Shown: in pieces, positions 1 through 48,296 of the stretch
Position numbering within the stretch: the stretch's first letter is position 1
Layout: the number at the start of each line of letters is the position of its first letter
Virus record (IMG/VR): IMGVR_UViG_3300050821_002957
Coordinates: 248,001-312,000 of that record
DNA length: 64,000 nucleotides
Direction: 5' to 3' (one strand)
Translations under genes and position numbers: made by a program
The notes under the pieces: generated by a model
Databases searched by the model: none
The model's input: only the letters and a program-made list of their open reading frames with translations
What the model was told of the DNA's origin: nothing

Positions 1-438
1 TTGTCGTGGTTCTGTGAATATTGTAACACCCTGCGTCTCTTCGTTGCTGAATGTAAAGTCCACGGCGCTCTGCTGAATGTCCTCAGAAACGCCAAAAACG
101 GCCAAGAAGCCGTCGATGGACACGATGCTATGGAAAGTGACCTCTTTGATCACGACGCCCGTCTCTTCATACGTCTCACGAATTCCGGCCTCTTGCCATG
201 ACTCATGACGTTCGATGTAACCACCGGGCATACAAAACTCTCCCCGGCCCGGATCGATGTTGCGTTGAAGGCCAAGGATGCCGATGTCGCCGCCATTTTC
301 ATCGACGATGGGCACAGCAATTATGATGATGGGGAATGGATTCAACCAGACATTCCTACCGCAGTTCTCACAATGAAAAGGATAGGCGTTCGATGCGTAC
401 TTGGTTCCGCAGTAATGACAATGATCGTTTGCTTTCAC
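1..438 (-). CDS. Nudix hydrolase with N-terminal zinc ribbon (runs off window edge; not in ORF track)
   Basis: Manual translation from GTG at 438: CHYCG...CENCG zinc ribbon, then Nudix box GGYIERHESWQEAGIRETYEETG. Confidence 0.88.
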   Translation of the reverse strand, partial: MKANDHCHYCGTKYASNAYPFHCENCGRNVWLNPFPIIIIAVPIVDENGGDIGILGLQRNIDPGRGEFCMPGGYIERHESWQEAGIRETYEETGVVIKEVTFHSIVSIDGFLAVFGVSEDIQQSAVDFTFSNEETQGVTIFTEPRQ

Positions 439-454
439 ATTCCGAAGTGTACCA

Positions 455-488
455 CAAAAGAAAGGCCAGCCGAAACAACTGGCTGGCC
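455..488 (-). terminator. Intrinsic terminator
   Basis: GGCCAGCC/GGCTGGCC hairpin followed by a U-rich tract on the minus strand, downstream of 526..1293. Confidence 0.6.
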
Positions 489-525
489 GTAGAGAGGAGA
501 AGGAGGAAATTTAGGCGTTGACGAC

Positions 526-1293
526 CTAAACAGGCTCGACCGGATAATTCGGCAGACCGAGACCGGCGATATGCTTGCATGAGCCATGAACACGATGGGC
601 CATGCAAGAACACTGCCAGCGATGATTGGTCTTGTGCTGACCGATGGTGTACTCGCTCGTGCTGTCCGTGAATGATTTGACCGTGAAGCGATTGGTGTAG
701 AAGGCAGTGTCCTCCAAGCGAGTCGAGGTACGGGGTATCAGTACCTTCGGCAACACAGCGGGAAGCGGTTGGCGCTTCGGAGCACCAGGAATATGAACTT
801 CCTCGCACGAGATGTCATTGCCGTCATCGTCGATGCTGACCTTGAAGCAAAAGACCATCGGCAGACCATTGACCATTTTGCCGGTGTCCACGACGTAGCG
901 ATACTCGATGTCGCAGGGATCTTTCATCATGATGCCACATGAAATGAAATCGAGGCGTTCCTTTTTCGGAACAGAAGTGAACTCACGCTTTTCGTTCGGG
1001 TCCTTTGGATTGTGCGAATGCTCGTGCAGCTTGCCTGCGGCATCTTTGAATTTGTAATCGACGGCGAACATCTCACCGAGGAACACGACGTATCGGGCAG
1101 CGAGAAAAGCATCGTCATCCAGACGATTGTCCTTGAGCTTCTTGCAACGGCGAAGGAACTTGTACAGATCGACGCCAGCGCCCTTGGGATAGCCGTCGCT
1201 GTGACGATAAACGATGGCGCTAAGATAGGGCTTGTTCGTTACTGGATCGATGTATGTGCTGTCGATGAAGTGTGTCGTTGACCGTGTGCTCAT
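526..1293 (-). CDS. Phage protein (YRHSDGYP family) with C-terminal SWIM-type zinc finger
   Basis: YRHSDGYP...DIEYRY N-domain; WQCSC-x8-CKH; start moved to ATG 1293, which lies 6 nt after the -10 box. Confidence 0.65.
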   Translation of the reverse strand: MSTRSTTHFIDSTYIDPVTNKPYLSAIVYRHSDGYPKGAGVDLYKFLRRCKKLKDNRLDDDAFLAARYVVFLGEMFAVDYKFKDAAGKLHEHSHNPKDPNEKREFTSVPKKERLDFISCGIMMKDPCDIEYRYVVDTGKMVNGLPMVFCFKVSIDDDGNDISCEEVHIPGAPKRQPLPAVLPKVLIPRTSTRLEDTAFYTNRFTVKSFTDSTSEYTIGQHKTNHRWQCSCMAHRVHGSCKHIAGLGLPNYPVEPV

Positions 1294-1574
1294 GTATCTA
1301 AGATAGCAAAGATACATCTAAAAGTCAACCACAGAGAGGAACTTTATTCTCTTCCTTTTCAACAACTTGAATCCACTTTCTCAGGTAGTAACGAGCGTCG
1401 TATTTTGTGCTCGTTTCTGCTTGAACAAATGGCGTTGGTTTGCTTTCAAGAATGAGTGGCATCGGCGTGGCTTTCAACATTGCGAGTTTGAAACGAACGT
1501 CGGGCCGTCTATCGAATCGCACGATCATTTCAGGAGCGTATTGAATCGCTGTACCGCCCGGTGTGGATCGTTGT

Positions 1575-7929: not shown

Positions 7930-9687
7930 TTGATTATTTAGCTTTCTGTGAAGAGAGTTGCAGGCGGTGGAATGAACTGGAAATGTGGGCCTTTGTAATG
8001 AAAGCCGTGGACGTAACTCATGGTTTGGCAGGAATTGTACCATTCGACAATTTGCCTTGCATCGTCGCCTTCTGCAATGTCTTGAGAGCCATCGTCATAA
8101 CGGATGTTGATGTAAATTGCTTTATTCTGTTCGGGCACATTTTGAGTATAGCACCGTCGCCACAGGCGTCAAATTTTCTTCTTTGCCCATCCTTCTGGTG
8201 ACGTTATTTCGGTGCCGAGAAAATACATGGGATCGAAGTCCAGATCACCGATACCTCGTTTCAACACCTTTTCGGGACTGACAATTTTTGAAGCCTGGAC
8301 ACCCTCTACAAAGCCGGGTTCCCGTTCGGCCTTATAGTCAAGGAATTCCAATGTGTGCGCCAGGGCTATGATCTCTTTGCTCTTGTCCATTGTGTGTCAG
8401 ACTTCCTTCAGAACGGTTTCAGCTTCATCTGCGGTGAAGTATCCGACTTTTCCTTTGCCGCACAACCATACTAGCGAATTGCAACAGTGACGGGCAACAT
8501 GGCTTCCATATCCGGCGTCCTTCAGGCGTTGGATCAGATCGTCGCTGATGTATTTGTTGCCATCGCTGTACGGTTCGGTGAAGGCTTCGAGTGCCTTGCG
8601 AATGGTGCTAAGTGCGGTGCGATACTTGTCGGTATGCTCGTCGATTTCTTTCCAGCCTTCATCGGTGAGATTAAACATCATCGAACGATAGCTGGCAAGC
8701 AAACCGTCTTCGAGTTCACTGAATGCTTCTTCAAGTTCGGGCGTCATAGTCCTCCGGTCAGCTTCTTGATTGCTTCGTCATCAAGGCCATACTTCTCGGC
8801 GACCAATGCGGCGTGGTCTGGCTTCAGTGGCAATGGTACGGCCCGGTAATAGCGCCAGAGGCCGTTATGACGCTCTTCGATACGCATGGTCTTCGGACAA
8901 ATCTTCATCCGCACGTCGGGCACAGTAAGATGCATGAACCACATTAGCGTTCAATCCCAGACTTGTTGTACCAGTCGTAAAAGTTCGGCCCATGGAACGC
9001 CGTAAACGAATCAAGAACACGCCTCCTCCGCAGCTTGCCAAACCGGATTTTTCGGAAGTGATCAAGATGATCCAGGATGGCTTGCAGGCTGCTCTGGATC
9101 ACACAAGAGACGACCGAATGCCGGTGACTCATGATGACTTCAGCCACTACCTTGAAGAGGAAGTTTTCAAGGCGATCTGGGACCATCGTCTATTTTCCGA
9201 CCGTCCAGTACATTGAAGAGGAAAACTAATATGCCAATGCCGAAACTTCATACTCTTTCCGATGCCGAACTCGAAGCGGAACTAAGACCTAATGAATCGC
9301 TGGCGACAGACTTTGGATATTTGACAATTTGATGATCGTCGGCATCCATGTTGTTTTCGGCTATGGTGCGACCGAGTTCGAGCATGAATTGAAGATCACT
9401 TATGCCTTCAGGCTTGACGGCGAGACAGGTTTTGCCATACATACCCCGACCCGAATAAGAACGGGTTTCATGCCCCATATCGTTAATCAATTCTTGAAGT
9501 GTCATTTTAATTCTCCTGGAGGCGACGGTAGTATTCTTTCTTGGTACATCTCATAAGTGGTTCCCGGCGACGTGCAGCCAATACCTCTGCTGCAATGCTG
9601 TTTCCGACATCGGCACAACGTTGTAATTCGGCGTCAGAAAATTCGCTGTAGTTGGTGACAGCGTTCGCCAAATGTTCGGGCGACAAT

Positions 9688-21125: not shown

Positions 21126-24100
21126 TTCAACTAAATATTTCCACTATGACAGCTTCATTTCTCTCCATTTTGAAATCAGTCGGTAAAGATCTTGGTCACG
21201 TCGGCAGTTGGATTGACGATGGTTTAAAGATCGCACAACCAATCATCGGCGTAATTGATCCTCCGTTGGCACCAATCTTTTTGGCTGTCGAAGCTGCCCT
21301 TGGTGCAATCCCAGCAGGCACCCCGATTACTGCCGACACCGTTCAGAAGTTTGTCACAGCCTCAGCTACCACTCAGGGCGTCAAAAGTATCTGTTGCCCC
21401 GGCGCAGCTTGTCCGACTTGCGGCTGCTAATTATTTCAACGCAGTCATTGCTGCATTGATTTTGGAATTGATAGCGTCGGCTCCACAAGTACAAGAACTA
21501 TAGCCATCTTCTGCACCACACGCCATTTTGTGTGATACATAGGCACCTTCCAGGGCGACCTTTGCTCGAATGAATCAAAACTTTTGAGACCGGCGCTGGC
21601 AACAAACTATCAGCAGTAGGTTTTGTTTCTCTCATTGCCCAGAACTGTGTATCGTAGACACGAGCGAACAGCGGTAACGGCGGTGTTAGATTACGGAGAA
21701 CCACTTCGGTCGGCAGGATGATTTGCTCAAAGCGCATCCGAAGAAAATCCATCGGCGGTGCGGCGTAAATTTCGTAGAGCTTCATTTCTTGATCGCCGCT
21801 TTCTTCTTTTTCATCTTTGTTCCGGCCATGCACAAACCAACTGTGATTCCAAACCAGACGTTCATGATTGCAATCTGGCCCACTGTATAGGTGGTAGCAT
21901 TCAGCATTGGTTCGACCTTATCGTTGATCCGAGAGTCTTCCATTAAATTTAATCGTTCGAGAATGTCTTTTACTATGTCGGCTCCGGTCGGCTGCGCCAT
22001 GTACATGATCTTTGGTCCGAGAAATTCGTAAAGACGTTTGCGGTCTTCGGGCGGCAAAGAGTCGGCTCCGATCAAATCGTAAGCGTCTGCAAATTCTGGC
22101 TTCATGATGAAGTCAAGAACTTTTTTGAAGTATAATTGGCCTTCTTCAGGCGTTCCATCAAACATTGGCATTATGCAGCCTTCTTTCCGAGAATTGCAAT
22201 GATTGCCCACTTCTCAAGTTCTTTTTTCGGCCAACGAGCAGCAGGCCACGGATCACCAAGAGAAACCCATTCCCCGGCGTGCATCACAAAGGCCCAGGTG
22301 TAGCAAATGCCTTTACCATACCAGCGGCGGTCGAAAGAGAATTCCATGTTAGTTCTGTCCTTTCGTCTGGACTCGAACCCAGGCAGTTGCTTTCTCTGTG
22401 CGCCAATAGCAGCCGTAGGCCATGAAGCGAATACGATTTCCTGTCATGCTTGCAAGGCCCTCGATCTTGGCGGCGACCGGCTTGCGTGCGTGATTGTCGA
22501 ACATAATCACATCACCGACCTGAACGTCTGAGGCGGCTTTGTAATCGCTGTTGCTTTCGTTCAGAGGCAGGGTGCTCATTTAGTTGACTCCCAACCAGAG
22601 TAAAAATATATGATACAACCGAACAATCTTATCTTCACGTTCACGACGCCGAATCAGTATTGAACGTCGGTGACCAGCTTCAATGTGAGACTGTGTTATG
22701 CCCATGAATCAATAATAGCAAAACGGACACGCCAAGTCAAGTAGCTACATCTTTTTTCTTCGGGCCTTTTTTGCGGCTCTTTTGTCGGCTCGGATCTTCT
22801 CAACTTCAGCCATTACAGCACGTTCGTAGGCGGCGGCGATGTCAAGCTGAAAGACCTTGCGACGGCCCTTGAGACGAAGCGCCAGCCATGTAGGATGGAT
22901 CGTGACGGCAATTTGACGAGACTTGCTACCTTCTCGAAAAGTGCTGTACGTCAATCGAGTTGTAGGCTTGTTGGCCTTGGTCATTTTATGCGGTCGCTTC
23001 CTTCAGACTTTTTTCGGTCATGTTCATCTGTTGGATCAAATGATTTGTGATGGCGGCTTGATCGGGACCTTCACCAGTGAATTCAAACTGGACGTTCGGC
23101 TGTGAAGCAAAATATACAGAAACCTGATTCACCTTGACACTAGCAAACTTCTCGAATACTTTGAGGATCTTGCGGACCCCGGCTTCTTCATACGGAGCAG
23201 AGAAAACAACGGATTTAAGCATGGGTCCAGCGTAACATGAATCCCAAACTTGTCAATCATTTGGGATGTAGATCGTAAAAACTGGAATTGGACATTGCTT
23301 CATGCGTCTGTCGTATTCTTCACACGGCAATTCTTCTTTGCAGGTCGGACATGCTTGGACGTGCTCACGCATGAACATGTAAAAATCGTCAAGTTCCATT
23401 TTCTCCCTAAACAAACTTTGCGTAGCTGTCACACGATCTATCAATGTGCCACTTTAGAGCCTCAAGAACGGCAGCATCTTCAGAAGAAACTTCATTCGGA
23501 TCACCACCGGCATAGATGACATCGTGCTCTACGGCAATGTTGCGGTCGTACTTCATCAAAATTGTAAGACCGGCGATCACTCTCTCGATGGTGCTCATGT
23601 TTTCCAATTTTTCCATGTGTCTAGTCCTTTTTAAAAAATGAGTGCGAACGACGGACACCACTCTACCGTCCGCACCCTCGCATGTTACTGCGATGTCTTT
23701 GTAGTCATCACAATGATTTCCATTGCATCACTCATTGTGAAGGTGCCGGGAAGAAGCACGCCATTACTGATGATACGCCATGCCTGAAGACCTTCGTCGA
23801 AGACAATGTTATCGGGCAGGCGTTGATTGGAGCGACCAACAAAATCAAACATCATCGGTAACGTCCTGTCTTGCGGAGCCATTCGTCACGTTCTGCTTTG
23901 CGTTGGCGCTGAAGAACCGTAGTCGCCATCGGAGCGCAGCGACAGACAGCGAATGCCATGAGTGCGATGATGAACCACGCAGCCAAATGACCCCAGTGGG
24001 AATTGTACGCTGAGAGAATAATGGCAATGAAAGATACAAATACTACGGCAAGTGATCCGTAGTTGATGATGGTCAGAAACCAGAAATAAAAATCCTGGTC

Positions 24101-24198: not shown

Positions 24199-25104
24199 TT
24201 ACGCTTCGACTTCGACTTCGTAGACAGCGAGGAACAGTTCGTTCAGTTCGTCGCTGTCGATGACTCCCGCACGATAATCCTTCAGGCCGAACAGGAACTT
24301 CTGAGCAGGACCCGCAGGCGTATTCTCGATGGTCTCGTCGATCCACTTCTTCACGTCGGCGTCGGTGCGCTTGATCGGCCCGGACACAGCAGCGCCAATT
24401 GCAGAAGCAGCCTTGGCGATACCTGAAGCGGTTGCACGACCATTCGGAGAATCGGCCTTCGCTTTGGCAATGACGGCCTTACGATCCTTGGTGGCGATCT
24501 TGGCGACAGTGTGAACAGCATCGAACTTCATGCCACCAGTAGCGAGTTCTTTCTGCGAATCCACGTCGAGTTCGAGTACCTTGCGACGGTTGCTGATGAA
24601 AGACGCAGGCTTGCCGAGTTTCTTGGCAATTTGAGCATCGGTCAGTCCGCACGGCTCGACCACCTGGAGGAACAGAACGTAATCGGTGTCGGTCAGATCC
24701 TTGCGAGTGGCGTTTTCGATGAAGCTGGCGAAGAGCGCTTCGGCTTCGTTCATCGGCTGGAACATCGCATCGAGCAAAAACGGATTGTCGGGACCGTAGG
24801 CAATCTCGGTCTCTGTGCCGGTTGCCAGATCCAGACGCCATCCCTTCAGCTTCTTCTTGTTGATGATGTCGGCGGCGAGAATACGAGTGTGGCCGGTGAC
24901 AGGGACGGCCTTCTCACCATCGCCACGACGCACGGTAATGGGCACCTTCTGTCCACCAGCGAGAAGACTCTGAACCATGTCTTCAATCTGTTCGTCGGTG
25001 CGAGTGACACGTCCGGTGTACTTGGCGAAGTTCTTCTTTAGATCGGCGGGTAAGAAGCGGGGAGCGTCCTTCTTTCCGTAAGTTTCGGTTGAGAATTTGA
25101 TCAT
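24199..25104 (-). CDS. ParB-like protein with HTH
   Basis: GQKVPITV, VTGHTR..A, IEN..RKDL, AQIAKKLGKPASFIS. Confidence 0.75.
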   Translation of the reverse strand: MIKFSTETYGKKDAPRFLPADLKKNFAKYTGRVTRTDEQIEDMVQSLLAGGQKVPITVRRGDGEKAVPVTGHTRILAADIINKKKLKGWRLDLATGTETEIAYGPDNPFLLDAMFQPMNEAEALFASFIENATRKDLTDTDYVLFLQVVEPCGLTDAQIAKKLGKPASFISNRRKVLELDVDSQKELATGGMKFDAVHTVAKIATKDRKAVIAKAKADSPNGRATASGIAKAASAIGAAVSGPIKRTDADVKKWIDETIENTPAGPAQKFLFGLKDYRAGVIDSDELNELFLAVYEVEVEA

Positions 25105-26007
25105 TTGTTTCGGTGTCCTTTTTTGTTTCGTTTTTACTACTCTGACTTTTCTACTCTAAACTAGGTGCATCTACTTTGTCAATAGCAAACGCAAAATTAT
25201 TTCACTAATTCCAACCAGCCCCATTGATTGTTGTCAGTCCACATGGTTTCCCATTCGTAGTCAATGGTGGCATCGAGCAGCACTTCGATACGTTGTGCGT
25301 CATGACCACCGTATTTCTTTGACGGCCCAGGCATTTCTACGACGGTTCCGATGCGGCCTTCGTTCATCGAATTGCCGCAAATCAGCACACGATCACCAAC
25401 TTTCACGATGGCCGGTGCAGGTACGGGCTTCGGTGTCGGGTTTGATTCTAGTCTTGCCAAAACCTCGTTGACAAAATCAATTTCCTGCCGATCACGTTCA
25501 GCCAGAACAGTCGGATCAATCAAGGCACGTTCGGCTTCATAAGCGGCCTTTGTAATGGCACACTTATCCAAAAATTCCCGGTGACAAGGCTTGCAGACAC
25601 ATTTGCGGACATGAGGACCAAAAGGCTTTTCCTCACTGAATGCACCAACATATTCGCCCTCCAGGTAATTCTCGTATTGGCTAGTGTTGATCATGAAACC
25701 ATCTTACCAGATAGATGTATCTAATGTCAACGAGTCACGGCAACTTTTTTTCAAGACGTTTCATCTCGATCAGTTGATGAAACAAGTCGGTACAGGTTTT
25801 CAACTGATCGAAAAATCGAGGATCGGCTGGCTTTTCTTCGGGATGGAGTGAAACCATTGTCGAAAGCAGCCCATTACAGGCTTCAATTTTGCGTTCCAAC
25901 AAAGTGATAGGACTGGGTTTCACAAATACCGGAGCCGGGGGAGGAACGCTCCGTGAAGGAACGTTCCCCAAAGTCGTCAAGAGAAGGATGGCGACTATCA
26001 TATCGTT

Positions 26008-30010: not shown

Positions 30011-30351
30011 TCCCTAATTGCCTCGCTTGGATACTGCTGCTACTACTTACAAATTCAACTTGTTCAACATATGTTTGAGTCGATCTGCATCTTTAGCTTG
30101 CATGATGAAACAATCGAAGTGACCATAACGACACTTGTACCCAAACACATATTTCACAGCCACCCACATCCGTTGGAAAAAGTTACGATAATGTTGCAGG
30201 AACACTTCCGTGTATATGCTATTATCTTCGTCATCCCAAGCAAACCGCAGCGTGTGTTCTGACGAGTGACAAGCACAGTCAAAATATTGCGGCTCAAATG
30301 GCTCAATCATTGGTATCATCTTCATCGGTATTTAGGGAATCCTTGTATGCC

Positions 30352-32771: not shown

Positions 32772-33032
32772 ATGGCTACCAGTAAAGATAACACTTTTGT
32801 CTGTAGTTTCTGCGATCCCCCAAGAAAATGTGTCAACGCTCAAGGTCTCGCAGCCCATCAACGGTCGGCACACCCAGATCAAGTCAAATCAAAATCAACA
32901 CCTAAAAAGACGCATCACAAAACATATCACAAAAAATCATCAGAGATCTCATTGGCCGATGCGATCAATGCGTTGGAAATCAAACGAGACGCTTTGGATG
33001 AAGTCATTAAAAATTTGAAGGAGATGTTATGA
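32772..33032 (+). CDS. C2H2 zinc-finger protein
   Basis: CSFC...GLAAHQRSAH; own TTGACT-17-TATACT promoter. Confidence 0.65.
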   Translation: MATSKDNTFVCSFCDPPRKCVNAQGLAAHQRSAHPDQVKSKSTPKKTHHKTYHKKSSEISLADAINALEIKRDALDEVIKNLKEML

Positions 33033-33662: not shown

Positions 33663-34913
33663 CTAGAGACGCCCGGAACGGATCAGTTCGAGGGCCTGTT
33701 CTTTCGATTTGATGTGACCGGCAAGCTGCCCATTCTCGGCGGCGTCCAGGATTCGTTTGAAATCTGGTCCTGGCTTCATTCCAAGTGCCTTCAGATCATC
33801 CCCATTGACAAATTTTGCCGGATTCAAGTCTTCGGCCTTCATGTTGGCAAACATTTTTGACAACATCTGGAAAGCAGCGATATGGACGTGCTTGTCCTGA
33901 GCCTCTGTACGGCATCCATAGAGCTTCAAGGCGTCGGGGAACAGCTTCTCACGCATCAGGCGTTTCAACACGTCCAGCGTCGTTCCAGCCGTCACAGAAC
34001 CGATTCTGGACTGAAGGTCGATGATGCCGGTAATCTGCTTGATCGTGTCGTTAAAAAACTTCAGACGTTTACCAATTTTTTCTGCGCTCCCTGAAGGCAA
34101 CATGTACAACGCACCAGCCAAACCCAATGCTGGATTGATGTTGGTGCCGATGAACGAAAGTGTTGCCATCATCTGAGCGTAATCATACGGAGTCATGTGG
34201 GCAACTTCCGGCAGAACATGCTCTAAGATGCCGGTGTTGTTCATTCCCTTGATTGTCTTGTGAGCGTCATGACCCATTGCCTTGGTCAATTCCTCTGTTA
34301 TGCGCTCTACGTCCATTTTCGCAATGTTCGGAGCGTGCGCCTGCATTGCCGCCAGTGTCTCTGGGTGGATCTCAAATCCGAGCTTCGCCTGAAAACGATG
34401 TGCCCGAAGCATCCGAAGATGATCCTGTGTAAAACGGTCGTTCGGATTGCCGACACATTTGATGAGGCCGTTTTTTGCATCGGCCTTGCCACCATGAAAA
34501 TCGATGATGTCACCAGTGAACGGGTCCATGTACATTGCATTGACGGTGAAGTCACGCCGGTTGGAATCTTGTTGTTGATCACGAGTGTATTCGACATCAT
34601 CTGGACGCCGACCATCAGTGTACTTTCCATCTTTGCGGAATGTGGCAATGTCGATACCGTGGCAGACAACGACACCAAATGATTTTCCTACGACACTTGT
34701 TCCTGGGAAAAGTTTGAGAACTTCTTCAGGTGTGGCGTCAGTTGCTACGTCAAAATCTTTTGGCTTGTGGCCGGTCAAAAAATCACGAACACAACCGCCA
34801 GCGAGATAGCCGACAAAGCCGTGTCTGCGAAGCGTAGTGATTACGTCTTTGGCGTCGTCAAGCGTGCCATAGGTGGACTCCCGAAGGAGGGCGAATTGTG
34901 TAAATGAGAGCAC
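33663..34913 (-). CDS. cca: CCA tRNA nucleotidyltransferase (class II, no HD domain) with capsid-targeting-like N-terminus
   Basis: GGCVRD..DFDVAT, RKD plus flexible loop Y.DGRRP, RRDFTVNA, QDHLRMLR; N-term MLSFTQFALLRE; TAAATA promoter. Confidence 0.88.
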   Translation of the reverse strand: MLSFTQFALLRESTYGTLDDAKDVITTLRRHGFVGYLAGGCVRDFLTGHKPKDFDVATDATPEEVLKLFPGTSVVGKSFGVVVCHGIDIATFRKDGKYTDGRRPDDVEYTRDQQQDSNRRDFTVNAMYMDPFTGDIIDFHGGKADAKNGLIKCVGNPNDRFTQDHLRMLRAHRFQAKLGFEIHPETLAAMQAHAPNIAKMDVERITEELTKAMGHDAHKTIKGMNNTGILEHVLPEVAHMTPYDYAQMMATLSFIGTNINPALGLAGALYMLPSGSAEKIGKRLKFFNDTIKQITGIIDLQSRIGSVTAGTTLDVLKRLMREKLFPDALKLYGCRTEAQDKHVHIAAFQMLSKMFANMKAEDLNPAKFVNGDDLKALGMKPGPDFKRILDAAENGQLAGHIKSKEQALELIRSGRL

Positions 34914-35452
34914 CGTATATTTAGTCCTTTAATATGAACATCCAGAGATTGTGATTTTGTTTTTCCTGTCGATCTCTTGACCATCGTTGAACCAGCTTAC
35001 CGACCAATCCGTAGACCACCAGGACAAAGCCGATGATCATTACGTTATTGATGCCGTACTGATTCAAAGCAAACATCACTTAGCCGATCCAATCATTTTT
35101 TGTGCTCCCAGTGAATCACTACGGTTGCGTACATTCCACCGCCATCGTGCGACTCCCGAACACCATATCCAAGCGGTGTCAGCATTGAAGCTACTTTTGC
35201 GACAAATTTTGATGCCGGGTAATAATCAACCCGAAACGAAGCAGCGCCGCTCGACGTGTACTTGACCGGATTGTCAATCATGTCCTCGATCTTTGGTGCA
35301 ACGACATTATTGATAAAATTGGTGACCTCGGTCTCAACTTCCTCAGCGTGCTTAATCTCGGCGGCGGCGACGTATTCAGCAGCAGTTTTGATGGTCAATC
35401 CGTTGTTCATGAATAAAGAATAGCATGAAGATGTATCTAATGTCAAGGCCCC

Positions 35453-35833
35453 TTAATCCGGCATCGTCATGATGTTCTTTTGATGCGGACGGGTCATGAA
35501 ATTTCCATTGCCATCGGGATTCATTTTTGGTTGTGCAGCGTAGCAATAATCAAACGTGACGACTCGACCCGGCTGTTCGTTTTCTGAAGAAGGATCGGCC
35601 CATTCGTCGCCAGCCCAATTGCCACTTGTAATGTGAATTTCGTGAGTGTGTCCGACAGCACCGGGCATTTTGCTGATCGCTTGTCCATAAACAGTGTCAG
35701 GAGTTCCACGACCACCTTCATGGCGACGACCCATCACAACGTTGTCGTAAGGATTGACATTGCCAGAAGGACCAGACATTGTACGGTTGTACATCTGGTT
35801 TTGCATAGCGGCAAATTGGGAGAAACTCAACAT
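35453..35833 (-). CDS. Late protein with capsid-targeting-like N-terminus
   Basis: MLSFSQF; TAAATA 5 nt upstream. Confidence 0.55.
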   Translation of the reverse strand: MLSFSQFAAMQNQMYNRTMSGPSGNVNPYDNVVMGRRHEGGRGTPDTVYGQAISKMPGAVGHTHEIHITSGNWAGDEWADPSSENEQPGRVVTFDYCYAAQPKMNPDGNGNFMTRPHQKNIMTMPD

Positions 35834-36190
35834 GCTTCTATTTAGATAGGATCACCACGATAAATAAGATCATGTATGCCTCACTCGTGCTTTACACCGA
35901 ACCACGGAGACCGCTGATCAATCCAAAGTTCGATTTGTTCGCTTGGTTAGACACTCGACAGGAACCAAATTTATTCCCGGCTCGTGTGGTAGATAAGGTT
36001 CAATTGATGCTTCCAGAGAAGGTAAAGACGATGGATGTTCTGTCGGCAGACATCTTTGACTTCATCTCTTGGCAAGCCGAAGAGAAGGGCTATGCCGTCG
36101 TCAGAAGCATCGATACGAATTGGATGTACTGGTCGATCCTAGCTGACAAGTACGTACTCCTGGACATGGTTCGAGTGTTGATCTGAAATG

Positions 36191-36555
36191 AAAAAGGCCG
36201 ACAGACACTCTCTTAAGTAGAGTATCCATCGGCCCAGTTCTCTGAACGAGTCGGTAGAGTCCTTGCAAGCGTCGATTGGGATGTTCGTAGGCGCAAGGCC
36301 ATACATCTGATATCGACGGTTTTTAAACCCTACAAGATTCAGCCCGGTTGCGGTGCCGTTAGCTGATCTCTGCATCACACACTATCTCGTTAGCAGGATG
36401 TACACGTCGCTCACCATTTTTCTAATGATACGAAATCTCTACACTGTCGTGCAAAGTGCGTGTCAACCCTGGCAAACTTGAGTTGGCTTTGAACCGTCCA
36501 GACTTAGACTGGGTTCGCTTTGTCCCGGTCGCATCGTCTGTAACCTCTTGCTCAC
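36191..36555 (-). ncRNA. Candidate ~365-nt standalone ncRNA
   Basis: TTGACT-17-TAGTAT promoter at 36562..36590; 16-bp terminator hairpin plus U5 at 36191..36234; no convincing ORF. Confidence 0.55.
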
Positions 36556-37294
36556 AAACCAATACTAACAAACCTCTTAGAAGGAGTCAAGAGAAATTTA
36601 AGGTTATTTTTCTATTGACTTCTCCCAAAAAATGTGCTATTCTGAAAGATTACTCTAAAGGAGCACCCCAAATCGCAGCCGCAGAAGGGCCACCAGCTTC
36701 CATGTAACATCCGTCTTCGCCACACTTCTCGCAAGTCATGTTATCGGCGGTGAATGCACTGGTCGCAGCTTCTCGGAGCCACTTCGCCTTGTTCAGCCCG
36801 GACATGTAGTCTTCATCTTCGGGCAACGTCTCGGCGATCAGCTTCTTGCTGTCAGTGGTGATTCTGAAGTTTACGCCTTCGAGTATTCTATCACCGAACT
36901 GGTATCCATCCAACAGACAAGCGTCCACCGGCCCACAATCTGGACATACGAGTTTCATTTCCACAGCCCTCCTATCGTTCCTATGATGTCTACAAACGTG
37001 CCCACTGCACAGACAGCGACGATCCAATACATCACCGTCTTGAACGTCTGATTGCGTCCAGGAGCCTTCCAAATGATGAGGGCCAAGAACAGCGCTACAG
37101 CAATCAAAAAGTGCTTGAACACAGATTGTAGTTCGGTCATGAAAAATATTGTAGCAGATTTTTGAGGAAAGTAAAATGAGCCGTTGTGGAGTCGAACTCA
37201 GCTTGGGTATATTTGGTCCCTGCGGTGCGGTTGGCAGTCAAAGAGGATGCCTTCGGCAATTGGGGTACAATTCCATATGCAAGGAAAAAAATTT

Positions 37295-37382
37295 TGGTGG
37301 GACGGGTGTGAGTCGAACACACAGGGTTCCAAGGAACATCCGCTTTACAGGCGGCTCTCGCTCCCTACGAGACTACCATCCC
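37295..37382 (-). tRNA. tRNA-Tyr(GTA), long variable arm, extended D stem
   Basis: GGGATGG/CCGTCCC acceptor, loop CTGTAAA, TTCGACT T-loop, ACCA end. Confidence 0.9.
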
Positions 37383-41710: not shown

Positions 41711-41876
41711 GAAACTAGAATAGCAAACCTACCCTACCATGTCAACAGTAGATGCATCTTTTTCTGGAAGGAATATTTTATCTACCTCTTGACATATTGA
41801 CGGCTGGTGCGCTATGCTGGTACTGTCAAAGAGAGTCCCATTTTCAACGACTTACGTCCGTTGATAAATACTCTCC

Positions 41877-42281
41877 ATGAAAACCTTCCTCGAATTTATC
41901 TTGACCGAGAATGCCATGTTACCGGGCGTTGCTGGCGTAATGAAACACCAACGGGACAATGGTTTAGCCAAGGTAGGTGTTCATCCCAATTTTGCTGCCA
42001 TTAAGAAGCAGCGTGAAGATAGCATCAACAAAGTTGGCACCCATCCAAATTTTGCTGAAATCTTACGTCGGCGTCAAGCAGGTCAAATGTCGGAAGAAGA
42101 AATGAACGAACTGCTTGGTCTATTCAAAAAGAAAAACGATGCAAAACCCTCGCCGTTTGCCAAACCAAAAAACGCAATTGGACATGGTGACAAGGCTTAT
42201 CGCACGAACCACCATTATGGGAACGGTGACATCGAACCATCCACCGTTCCTATTTTCAAACCAACTTGGCAGAATCGTTAG
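41877..42281 (+). CDS. Probable internal head protein
   Basis: N-term MKTFLEFILTE resembles the T4 capsid targeting sequence MKTYQEFIAE; TAAATA promoter; internal repeat KVG.HPNFA.I. Confidence 0.65.
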   Translation: MKTFLEFILTENAMLPGVAGVMKHQRDNGLAKVGVHPNFAAIKKQREDSINKVGTHPNFAEILRRRQAGQMSEEEMNELLGLFKKKNDAKPSPFAKPKNAIGHGDKAYRTNHHYGNGDIEPSTVPIFKPTWQNR

Positions 42282-45382: not shown

Positions 45383-45458
45383 TGGCCGCTGGTTCCAGTT
45401 ACGCTCTGGACTCTTCTGTTCTTCAGACAGACGCTTTCACTAGATTAGCTTACCAGCG
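45383..45458 (-). tRNA. tRNA-Phe(GAA), atypical T-loop AGCGTAA and D-loop AG
   Basis: CGCTGGT/ACCAGCG acceptor, TCTGT-CTGAAGA-ACAGA anticodon arm, TCCAG/CTGGA T stem, GCCA end. Confidence 0.85.
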
Positions 45459-47169: not shown

Positions 47170-47248
47170 TGGTGGATCGCCAGGGATTTGAACCCTGCTG
47201 TTATCCTCGGTGCAAGCGAGGCAAACACCCCAAGCATTTCCGCAACCC
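47170..47248 (-). tRNA. tRNA-Ala(TGC), non-canonical 6-bp D stem
   Basis: GGGTTGC/GCGATCC with G3.U70; AAATGC-TTGGG-GTGTTT D arm; CCTCG-CTTGCAC-CGAGG. Confidence 0.85.
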
Positions 47249-47530: not shown

Positions 47531-48220
47531 TTAGGTCAAAGATCGTATTCTTTATCTATACACGCTACAGTTTGCTTTCAATAGCGCCTTTGACTCTTTC
47601 AGTCTAACATCCTTAGTATGGGATGTCAAGTGCCACGAACATAATAATTTCATCTTCGTCTTTTTTGCGACGAGCAGCAGCTTCTTTCTCAGTCAACACC
47701 AGAGGAGACGGATTGCCTTCGACTTTGATATTCACTGATAAACCTTGCTGGAGCCATCCAGATACTTCATCGGGCGGCGTCTCGACAAATGCCTGATCAC
47801 ACGCCTTCTGAATTTCGACATTGCGTATTGCAGCAAGCGGTTTGCCGGATGGCGTCATGATGTCTACGTTACAAAGAAGCATGTTTATCTACCAACTGCT
47901 ACGGCTGAAATTCCGATAACACTTTCAATATTGTACAACAGACGAGCGGCTTCTGACAATTCTGAGCCGGTGCGATCCAGTGTAGCATGGACGCCGGTCG
48001 GATCAGAATCAGCTTTTGAGTCATCGTCTTCTCCGGTGTATTGAAGAACATCTAACACCGTTTTTAAGCGACGAGCCAACATCCTAGCCAATTGCAAATT
48101 TGCATCCGAAGAAGATTGAATTGTCGTTGGTTCGTGGTTCTTTTCTGCTGGACCGTCAACAACTAATCCAAACTTCTCTAATAAAACTTTGTTTCCTTTC
48201 TTTCCTGTATTCATAATTTT

Positions 48221-48296
48221 TGGTTGGCCCAGATGGAATCGAACCATCAACCTCAGAATTATCAGTTCTGCGCTCTACCAATTGAGCTATGGGCCA
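48221..48296 (-). tRNA. tRNA-Ile(GAT)
   Basis: TGGCCCA/TGGGCCA, CAGAA-CTGATAA-TTCTG, ACCA. Confidence 0.95.

Follow-up and report, generated by a model that had tools for sequence, protein, structure and literature searches.

The genome of a 406-kb T4-like soil phage encodes a class II tRNA nucleotidyltransferase of the CCA-adding type that carries at its N-terminus a short peptide resembling the capsid targeting sequence (CTS) used by phage T4 to load proteins into its head, so that, as inferred from sequence, the enzyme is probably delivered into the host cell together with the DNA. The gene is found at positions 33663-34913 (minus strand) of the 64,000-nucleotide stretch analysed here (the window; positions 248,001 to 312,000 of IMG/VR record IMGVR_UViG_3300050821_002957). 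An initial annotation, made from the sequence alone, had described a CCA-adding enzyme without an HD domain, preceded by a late promoter and starting with a CTS-like peptide, and our analysis confirms this observation. Its interpretation, a virion-packaged tRNA-end repair enzyme injected with the DNA, is only partly supported.

A tRNA nucleotidyltransferase with an added N-terminal peptide

The ORF encodes 416 amino acids and has a GTG start, with an in-frame stop five codons upstream and no in-frame ATG before residue 127. Pfam identifies the PolyA_pol head domain (PF01743, E 2e-32; residues 36-151, positions 34461-34808, minus strand), PolyA_pol_RNAbd and tRNA_NucTran2_2, with PF12627 and PF13735 above their cut-offs. 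The NCBIfam model NF009814 (CCA tRNA nucleotidyltransferase) covers residues 18-409, at 249 bits against a cut-off of 290. The best matches in the PDB are CCA enzymes, the first being 1miv from Bacillus stearothermophilus (E 7e-47), and human TRNT1 aligns over residues 36-411. In an alignment of 30 phage orthologues, motif A (G39-G40-C-V42-R43-D44 and the catalytic carboxylates D53-F-D55) is invariant, as are R119, R120, F122 and T123 of the ribose-selecting motif B (R119-R120-D121-F-T), whereas D121 is nearly invariant, with Y in one orthologue (P0008). Motif D, the amino-acid template for CTP/ATP (positions 34413-34427, minus strand), reads Q163-D-H-L-R167, that is, QDxxR in place of EDxxR, as the initial annotation had stated. 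The QD variant is shared by a sub-clade of nine orthologues (P0001-P0008 and P0011 in the alignment), while 20 of the others have ED and one (P0027) has DD, with D164 and R167 invariant throughout. No PF01966 hit and no H..HD..D motif were found in the aligned region of the phage clade, so that the protein is not of the multifunctional HD-domain type, in contrast with its closest cellular relatives by sequence, which are HD-containing enzymes of Acidobacteria-like bacteria with 35-38% identity.

The first 12 residues (MLSFTQFALLRE; positions 34878-34913, minus strand) behave as a separate module. They are conserved in 29 of the 30 phage orthologues, across identities of 46-72%, and are absent from cellular homologues, an absence on which the initial annotation had made its reading depend. 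Cellular homologues and the B. stearothermophilus enzyme begin at about residue 14-20 of this protein, and in the AlphaFold model, which is otherwise confident (mean pLDDT 89.8), residues 1-14 have a pLDDT below 50 and are predicted to be unfolded. In the T4 CTS, MKTYQEFIAE (PMC8442874), targeting depends on residues 4 and 7 and processing on residues 8 and 10, and gp21 cuts after L/I-x-E (PMC9026906). The consensus of the phage clade, M-x-[ST]-F-x-Q-F-(xx)-[LIV]-x-E, retains these positions: F4 is present in all 29 tagged orthologues, position 7 is F in 25 and H or Y in the others, and [LIVM]-x-E is present in 28 of the 29 (P0027 has F-V-E). In the present protein the predicted prohead-protease cut would lie after Glu12 (L10-R11-E12|S13), and the sequence from Ser13 on is STYGTLDDAK.

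In order to find close relatives we searched IMG/VR with the single protein, which returned none, and with an alignment, which returned only relatives of at most 44% identity, with all but a few of their matches beginning after the tag. A collection of phage GenBank genomes contained no relative at the DNA level and no protein above 33% identity. Close relatives were found only as metagenome contigs.

Late-promoter motifs and other tagged proteins

On the minus strand, the sequence CTAAATA (positions 34918-34924) precedes the gene, separated from the GTG by the four nucleotides tacg, as the initial annotation had noted for TAAATA. The same heptamer is the late-promoter consensus of the T4-like phage Aeh1, at -12 to -6 (PMC1524935). 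It occurs 79 times in the genome, 28 of them exactly 5 nt before an ORF start, against a mean of 0.73 for 104 permuted heptamers. A homologue of the late sigma factor gp55 is also present (E 4e-19). The spacer of the CCA gene is not the modal 5 nt, and strict T4 spacing would place +1 on the U of GUG. Leaderless GUG initiation is inefficient in some bacteria. In addition, a sigma-70-like match (TTGACA-18-TATTCT; positions 35417-35446, minus strand), which is a consensus match only, could give early read-through transcription into the gene, and together with a weak AAGGA could allow early cytoplasmic expression with the tag uncut. Soil metatranscriptome contigs were compared with the region to locate the transcript 5' end, but only two contigs of 151 nt fell inside the gene, which is too thin a coverage to be informative.

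The tag recurs on unrelated proteins of the same genome. The T4-derived pattern M.[ST][FY].[EQ]F matches six predicted N-termini where 0.023 are expected (P about 2e-13), and all six lie behind (C/A)TAAATA, against 50 of 600 other genes (Fisher p = 5e-7). One of the six is an Acb1 anti-CBASS enzyme (PF23474, E 5e-22), fused to a ParB-like domain, and three are small basic proteins (pI 9.9-11). Two tagged neighbours of the CCA gene had been pointed out in the initial annotation, and both are as described. The first, of 126 amino acids (positions 35453-35833, minus strand), begins MLSFSQFAAMQ, with Gln where the cleavage Glu would be, belongs to no known family, and has CTAAATA exactly 5 nt before its ATG (positions 35839-35845, minus strand), in a leaderless arrangement. 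Similarly tagged small ORFs of 119, 75 and 90 amino acids in related megaphage contigs start MLSFSQFAEMQ, VLSFNQFLQIQ and MLSFAQFLQLQ. The second, a basic ORF of 134 amino acids (positions 41877-42281, plus strand; mature pI about 9.9), begins MKTFLEFILTE, resembles a T4 internal protein, and is preceded by ATAAATA 6 nt before the ATG (positions 41864-41870, plus strand). It has no family in PHROGs or PADLOC and only a sub-threshold WbmS-like match in Pfam (20 bits against a cut-off of 27). PADLOC gave no hits on any of the tagged proteins.

The copies of promoter and tag within the genome share little DNA identity beyond the motif, which argues against a recently copied DNA cassette. The possibility that the tag is a requirement for leaderless translation was also rejected, since most CTAAATA-N5-ATG genes lack it and the conservation is at the amino-acid level, with position 3 using Ser codons from both codon families, which shows selection on the protein rather than on the RNA.

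The genome encodes the corresponding head machinery, namely a T4-type prohead protease (Peptidase_S77, PF03420, E 1.4e-38; genome positions 24478-25170, minus strand) and a gp23 capsid protein (PF07068, E 2e-141) with a propeptide ending LME|AA where T4 gp23 is cut at LTE|AE. A gp22-like core protein is encoded at genome positions 22322-23836 (minus strand). As a positive control, the degenerate tag pattern was applied to T4, where it hits only ipI, ipII, ipIII and gp61.1. In IMG/VR, the promoter-N5-ATG-tag cassette occurs in 70 loci, against 10 for a permuted promoter, and position 10, although not specified in the search, is Glu in 21 of 42 unique N-termini. Orthologous genes in related megaphage contigs repeat CTAAATA-N5-GTG or CTAAATA-N6-ATG. 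Pfam analysis of ten of the IMG/VR cargo proteins gave almost nothing, with one FMN reductase hit that is probably a chance pattern match and one weak cytidylyltransferase hit. No homologues of the abundant non-coding RNA were found among the loci examined.

Relationship to known systems

The closest comparison is with the T4 CTS and the internal proteins that bear it. There, as here, a peptide of roughly ten residues has an aromatic residue at position 4, Phe at position 7 and L/I-x-E at its end, the genes lie behind late-promoter motifs, the genome encodes an S77 prohead protease and a gp23 capsid protein, and the tag is shared by several unrelated cargo proteins, mostly small and basic. In our case, however, the putative cargo is a 46-kDa RNA-end enzyme instead of a small basic anti-restriction protein, the tag is 12 residues long with two extra residues before L-x-E, and CTAAATA is placed so that the mRNA would be leaderless, whereas the T4 ip genes have AAAGGAAACAT between the promoter region and the ATG. 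What is new is the kind of putative cargo, on a T4-type capsid tag that is already known.

With the Bacillus-type class II enzyme (1miv; NF009814) the protein shares the head, neck, body and tail architecture without HD activity, motifs A, B and E, the D and R of motif D, and an alignment running from residue 18-20 to the C-terminus, but it differs in the extra N-terminal tag, the Gln in motif D and the score below the equivalog cut-off. The tRNA nucleotidyltransferases of cultured T4-like and jumbo phages (Aeh1, KVP40, phiN3 and others) are also CCA-type enzymes that accompany large tRNA gene sets and have been proposed to take part in tRNA repair (PMC7824862), but they start directly at the GGAVRD motif, with no tag, and share at most 33% identity with the present protein.

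The best precedent for a tagged, packaged enzyme is the cyanomyovirus core protein T4-GC190 ('cytidylyltransferase'), an enzyme-sized protein of T4-like phages with the N-terminus M-[KR]-x-F-x-x-F-[LI]-x-E, which keeps F4, F7, [LI]8 and E10. Its S-SM1 member was found in purified virions (PMC3037559), and a protein annotated as cytidylyltransferase, identified by annotation only, was also detected in S-CREM2 virions (PMC10665884). The strict tag pattern missed the S-SM1 orthologue, in which direct inspection showed a variant tag, MKKFSAFLNE, so the pattern under-counts. T4-GC190 belongs to a different, cytidylyltransferase-like enzyme family of unknown function with no link to tRNA 3' ends, and head targeting by its N-terminus is an analogy only. 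T4 Alt, an ADP-ribosyltransferase, is likewise an enzyme packaged in the head, trimmed by gp21 and ejected to act at once on host machinery (PMC9026906), although with a different propeptide, activity and target (RNA polymerase).

Proposed role and alternative explanations

We propose, with moderate confidence, that a 12-residue T4-type CTS has been added to an HD-less class II tRNA nucleotidyltransferase. In this view, late in infection the gp55-type promoter CTAAATA would drive a leaderless or nearly leaderless mRNA beginning at the GTG, and the tag, through its aromatic residues at positions 4 and 7, would direct the new protein into the scaffolding core of the assembling prohead. There the S77 protease would remove the tag after Leu-Arg-Glu12, leaving an enzyme whose N-terminus matches that of bacterial CCA enzymes. 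The enzyme would stay in the filled head and be ejected with the DNA, along with the tagged Acb1 phosphodiesterase and several small basic proteins, and in the newly infected cell would restore C-C-A on tRNAs with trimmed 3' ends before any phage protein has been made. The enzyme family, the tag and its conservation, the promoter motif and the presence of the head-maturation and late-transcription genes are established by our analysis, whereas CCA addition itself, late expression, targeting and presence in the virion, cleavage, ejection and the repair role are inferred. All the sequence-level predictions of the initial annotation held, but its argument for repair over maturation, that all nine tRNA genes already encode CCA, is weaker than stated: the nine tRNA genes in the window, taking ARAGORN and Rfam together, are indeed all followed by CCA, but genome-wide 4 of the 44 ARAGORN calls lack it. 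Moreover, without an HD phosphoesterase the enzyme could not mend 3' ends that carry a phosphate or a cyclic phosphate, and the Q163 substitution leaves its nucleotide specificity uncertain.

A less likely but surviving alternative is that the protein is an ordinary cytoplasmic enzyme for maturation and upkeep of the 44 phage tRNAs, made inside the infected cell and never packaged, with the N-terminal peptide doing something else, such as aiding stability, an interaction, or efficient expression from leaderless mRNA. Phage-encoded CCA-adding enzymes are common in jumbo phages (PMC7824862), the four tRNA genes without CCA would be enough to explain the presence of the gene, a possible early promoter lies upstream, and the cultured T4-like phages have untagged versions. 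However, this does not explain why the same peptide heads unrelated proteins such as Acb1 and small basic ORFans, nor why the conserved positions are exactly the T4 CTS determinants plus an L-x-E site, and leaderless expression does not need the tag.

More doubtful is the possibility that the protein is packaged and ejected but acts, with QDxxR in motif D, as an A-adding enzyme, a poly(A) polymerase or another RNA-tailing enzyme, for example to mark host RNAs for decay. The conservation of Q163 in a sub-clade, a match of the head domain to PcnB models (193 bits over residues 20-241) and the score below the CCA equivalog cut-off speak in its favour. Against it, only CCA-type models and structures match over the full length, including the body and tail domains, the base-reading residues D164 and R167 are invariant, and sister orthologues with ED share the same tag and gene context. 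A chance resemblance to the T4 CTS, or an artefact of start-codon choice, might be considered because the motif is short and the GTG is assigned from sequence alone, but is effectively refuted by the N-terminal enrichment, the conservation in 29 orthologues, the T4 positive control, the upstream in-frame stop and the lack of any other start codon that would keep motif A.

A broader reading, which we consider only tentatively, is that a lineage of roughly 400-kb T4-like soil megaphages uses an ancient capsid-targeting code, shared across the T4 superfamily, to pre-load its heads with a counter-defence and start-up kit, comprising a CCA-restoring enzyme, an Acb1 nuclease that degrades cyclic-nucleotide signals, and basic DNA-associated proteins. 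The injected CCA enzyme would rebuild tRNA ends trimmed during dormancy or by a tRNA-end-targeting defence, so that translation of the first phage genes can begin, and the tag would also allow the ejected cargo of uncultured T4-like phages to be read from sequence alone.

Phage proteins that travel inside the head act before any phage gene is expressed and are therefore front-line weapons against host defences, but outside T4 and a few model phages they can only be found by proteomics of cultured viruses. Our findings suggest that the T4 CTS is a conserved sequence code that can be searched for, extending from coliphage T4 through cyanophages to uncultured soil megaphages, and that the cargo can include RNA-end and signal-degrading enzymes. 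An injected CCA-adding enzyme would be the first example of translation-apparatus repair delivered by a virion, and a tagged Acb1 would mean that anti-CBASS activity is present from the first second of infection.

Genome context and assignment of the enzyme

The 405,631-bp IMG/VR virus record from which the window is taken (bases 248001-312000) has 46% G+C, and the window is found in soil metagenomes. The genome is that of a very large member of the T4 superfamily. It encodes a gp23-type major capsid protein (PF07068, E 2e-141), which is 58-63% identical to those of pelagimyophages and cyanomyoviruses, a T4-type prohead protease (Peptidase_S77, E 1.4e-38), and a homologue of the T4 late sigma factor gp55 (E 4e-19, 35% identity), in addition to 44 tRNA genes identified by ARAGORN.

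The ORF at 33663..34913 (-) encodes a protein of 416 aa and starts with GTG, the upstream sequence on the coding strand being CTAAATA-tacg-GTG. A stop codon is found in frame 5 codons upstream, and the next in-frame Met is residue 127, beyond catalytic motif A, so that the GTG is the only sensible start. The protein has the PolyA_pol head domain, the RNA-binding domain and the tRNA_NucTran2_2 tail, but no HD domain. Its best curated match is the Bacillus-type CCA tRNA nucleotidyltransferase model NF009814, which covers residues 18-409 at 249 bits, below the cut-off of 290. The best solved structure is the Bacillus stearothermophilus CCA enzyme 1miv (E 7e-47), and human TRNT1 aligns over residues 36-411, whereas poly(A) polymerases match only the head. 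Motif A (GGCVRD, D53/D55), motif B (RRD), and D164 and R167 of motif D are conserved in 30 orthologues, while position 163 is Gln in a sub-clade of nine, Glu in twenty of the others, and Asp in one orthologue (P0027). The initial annotation had described a CCA-adding enzyme without HD domain, with QDxxR instead of EDxxR in motif D, and with a GTG start located 4 nt after TAAATA, and all of its descriptive statements hold.

Nine tRNA genes lie in the window and each is followed by an encoded CCA, as had also been stated. This count is the union of two tools that disagree, as Rfam finds a tRNA at 45386-45458 (-) that is missed by ARAGORN, whereas the Tyr (37295-37382) and second Ala (47170-47248 (-)) tRNAs of ARAGORN do not reach the Rfam tRNA threshold. 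Across the whole genome, four ARAGORN calls lack the CCA, namely Val-tac at 8114, Pro-cgg at 119850, Leu-cag at 120850 and Pro-tgg at 121021. Most of the 44 tRNA genes end in an encoded CCA followed at once by an A/T-rich motif such as AAATTTT, in many cases continuing with ATG (for example at window positions 37283-37295 and 48209-48221 (-)), which looks like a shared processing or termination signal.

A conserved N-terminal tag and its link to a late-promoter motif

About 33 close relatives of the enzyme were retrieved from metagenomes, several of them on contigs of 370-400 kb, and all of these lack the HD domain and cover the query from residue 1. The next tier consists of cellular, HD-containing enzymes with 35-38% identity, which cover only 94% of the query. 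In the alignment, 29 phage orthologues with 46-72% identity begin with M-[KLRQM]-[ST]-F-x-Q-F-(0-2 residues)-[LIV]-x-E, whereas the cellular proteins, and one divergent phage-like sequence (P0035), start about 14-20 residues further in. Residue 7 of the B. stearothermophilus enzyme aligns with residue 20 of this protein, and removal of 12 residues would therefore leave a native-like N-terminus. An AlphaFold2 model calculated with the 30-sequence alignment has a mean pLDDT of 89.8 and a pTM of 0.82, but residues 1-14 are left below pLDDT 50, even though they are conserved in the alignment, which is the behaviour expected of a flexible appendage that is not part of the fold.

A scan of all six frames of the genome revealed the same motif at the very start of other ORFs, besides the CCA gene itself. 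These are found at genome positions 369676 (+) (303 aa, MKTFAQFMTE), 289877 (+) (134 aa, MKTFLEFILTE, window 41877), 283833 (-) (126 aa, MLSFSQF, window 35833), 242511 (-) (84 aa, MQSFSEFLIAE), 194621 (-) (78 aa, MLTFTQFLKE) and 232618 (-) (86 aa, (V)LTFKEFIAEE), the last being less certain because it overlaps another gene call. In a gene call of 606 genes made for this analysis, a regular expression taken from the T4 internal proteins, M.[ST][FY].[EQ]F, matches six N-termini where 0.023 are expected from its internal frequency (P about 2e-13). Position 3 uses Ser codons from both families (TCN and AGY) as well as Thr codons, and the Phe codons vary, indicating that selection acts on the peptide rather than on the RNA.

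The 303-aa protein (genome 369676-370587 (+), outside the window) is an Acb1 anti-CBASS 2H phosphoesterase (PF23474, E 5e-22, with the profile starting at residue 15) fused to a ParB/sulfiredoxin-like domain (DGHHR), and its tag suggests that anti-CBASS activity is delivered with the DNA. In T4, ipI lies directly beside 57B (Acb1) and the tRNA cluster. Three of the small proteins have no family and would be strongly basic after tag removal (pI 9.9-11), and they resemble T4 internal proteins. An extreme version is the 78-aa protein (genome 194385-194621 (-)), which has an uninterrupted run of 13 lysines and a predicted mature pI of 11. The 126-aa neighbour at window 35453-35833 (-), and similarly tagged small ORFs in three related megaphage contigs (L094, L095 and L097), have the targeting half of the tag but Gln where the cleavage Glu should be (FAAMQ, FAEMQ, FLQIQ and FLQLQ). 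In T4, Asp at position 10 blocks processing but still allows packaging, so this family may be packaged uncut. A looser scan adds a SprT-like zinc protease (HELVH, PF10263; genome 19294-20364 (-)) immediately downstream of the major capsid gene, the protease beginning with MLKFQQWLAE|S, a looser match to the tag with F4, W7, L8 and E10, and also a 192-aa protein with a weak methyltransferase match.

All six strictly tagged genes have (C/A)TAAATA within 20 nt upstream, against 50 of 600 other genes (Fisher p = 5e-7). CTAAATA occurs 79 times in the genome, and in 28 cases it lies exactly 5 nt before an ATG or GTG that opens an ORF of at least 40 codons, against a mean of 0.73 for 104 permutations of the heptamer. 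Examples in the window are at 35834-35845 (-), 30326-30335 (-) and 32883-32894 (-), and the motif also stands upstream of the capsid gene and of many genes in the 20-100 kb structural block. The T4 late promoter TATAAATA occupies -13 to -6, and in the T4-like phage Aeh1 the late consensus is CTAAATA starting at -12 (PMC1524935). With this geometry a 5-nt spacer puts +1 on the first base of the start codon, which implies a large set of leaderless late mRNAs, some of them starting with GUG, whereas T4 itself has leaders and Shine-Dalgarno sites on its ip genes. For the CCA gene, however, the spacer is 4 nt, and strict spacing would put +1 on the U of GUG, while a shift of one base to the purine G would give a leaderless GUG. 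In the related megaphage contigs the orthologous gene has CTAAATA-N5-GTG (L094) or CTAAATA-N6-ATG (L095), and other small tagged ORFs with CTAAATA-N5-ATG lie nearby.

A sigma-70-like match at 35446-35417 (-) could additionally give early read-through transcription into the CCA gene. Another such promoter match (TTGACT-17-TAGTAT, 36590-36562) and a strong intrinsic terminator (36235-36195) delimit a stretch of about 360 nt with no convincing ORF, only short overlapping ones of up to 79 aa (window 36195-36590 (-)). In soil metatranscriptome contigs this stretch is covered at depths of about 4000, 370, 48 and 77 with no mismatches, while neighbouring genes are at 0-4. It folds with a z-score of -4.0, and has no Rfam match and no copy among the loci retrieved in this work. 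It is probably an abundant, early-expressed, structured phage non-coding RNA.

Comparison with T4 and other phages

The capsid targeting sequence (CTS) of T4 is MKTYQEFIAE (PMC8442874). The first ten residues of IPIII are sufficient for packaging, with targeting depending mainly on residues 4 and 7 and processing on residues 8 and 10, and gp21 cuts after L/I-x-E (PMC9026906). The conserved positions of the tag described here are the same ones, in line with the resemblance proposed in the initial annotation. As a positive control, the degenerate DNA pattern derived from the megaphage tags was run on the T4 genome, where it hit four places, with no hits for the reversed-pattern controls. The four are ipI (MKTFKEF), ipII and ipIII (MKTYQEFIAE), and the uncharacterised gp61.1. 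The latter, a hypothetical protein of 54 aa (positions 467-631 (-) of L193, the T4 locus with gene 61.1), starts with MKTFKEFIKE, a near-perfect CTS with an I-K-E cleavage motif, but is not listed among the T4 internal proteins, and may be an overlooked head cargo protein. The capsid protein of the megaphage has L-M-E|A-A at the point where T4 gp23 is cut (L-T-E|A-E, after Glu65), suggesting that the protease specificity is conserved.

The pattern also hits three ORFs in cyanophage P-SSM2, one of which is the 424-aa 'cytidyltransferase' T4-GC190 (MKSFSQFLTE), and seven members of that family from different cyanophages all keep F4, F7, [LI]8 and E10. The member from Synechococcus phage S-SM1 (MKKFSAFLNE) was detected in purified virions by mass spectrometry (PMC3037559), and a cytidylyltransferase was also found in S-CREM2 virions (PMC10665884). 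An enzyme-sized protein with this tag is therefore known to be virion-associated in a relative, although the tag has not been shown to be the cause. In S-SM1 the tagged protein (positions 339-1313 (+) of L197, the S-SM1 locus) lies directly downstream of an ORF with a ligase-like KxDG motif, so an RNA-end enzyme context may be shared with the locus studied here.

Across IMG/VR the full cassette (CTAAATA-N5-ATG plus tag) occurs in 70 loci, against 10 for the same pattern with a permuted heptamer. Position 10 was not specified in this search, yet it is Glu in 21 of the 42 unique N-termini, and positions 8-10 read [LIVFMY]-x-E in 20, and in 9 more after a shift of one or two residues.

Phage CCA-adding enzymes are well known and have been discussed as tRNA repair enzymes (PMC7824862), and CTS-mediated packaging is well known in T4, but the combination of the two appears to be new. 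The tRNA nucleotidyltransferases of the cultured T4-like phages Aeh1, phiN3 and KVP40 start directly at the GGAVRD motif, without a tag, and no cultured phage has a homologue above 33% identity. In addition, literature searches found no report of a packaged CCA enzyme.

Proposed delivery of the enzyme with the phage DNA

The initial annotation had proposed a virion-packaged enzyme that is injected with the DNA and repairs tRNA ends, an interpretation that our analysis supports in part. The assignment to the enzyme family, the tag and its conservation, the promoter motif, and the presence of the head-maturation and late-transcription genes are established from the sequences, whereas late expression, targeting to the head, trimming of the tag, ejection, CCA addition itself and the repair role are inferred. 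Soil metatranscriptome contigs covered the gene with only two 151-nt pieces and gave no evidence on expression.

The main alternative is a purely cytoplasmic enzyme whose tag has another function. The four tRNA genes without an encoded CCA would indeed give the enzyme an ordinary maturation job, but this alternative does not explain why the tag is shared with unrelated cargo, why it matches the T4 determinants, or why it has an L-x-E site.

The best-supported reading is that the enzyme is made late, is directed into the prohead core by its tag, is trimmed after Glu12, and is ejected with the DNA alongside Acb1 and basic internal proteins. As it lacks the HD phosphoesterase, it could only mend ends with a free 3'-OH. 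Its task in the new host, by inference, would be to restore CCA ends before phage translation starts.
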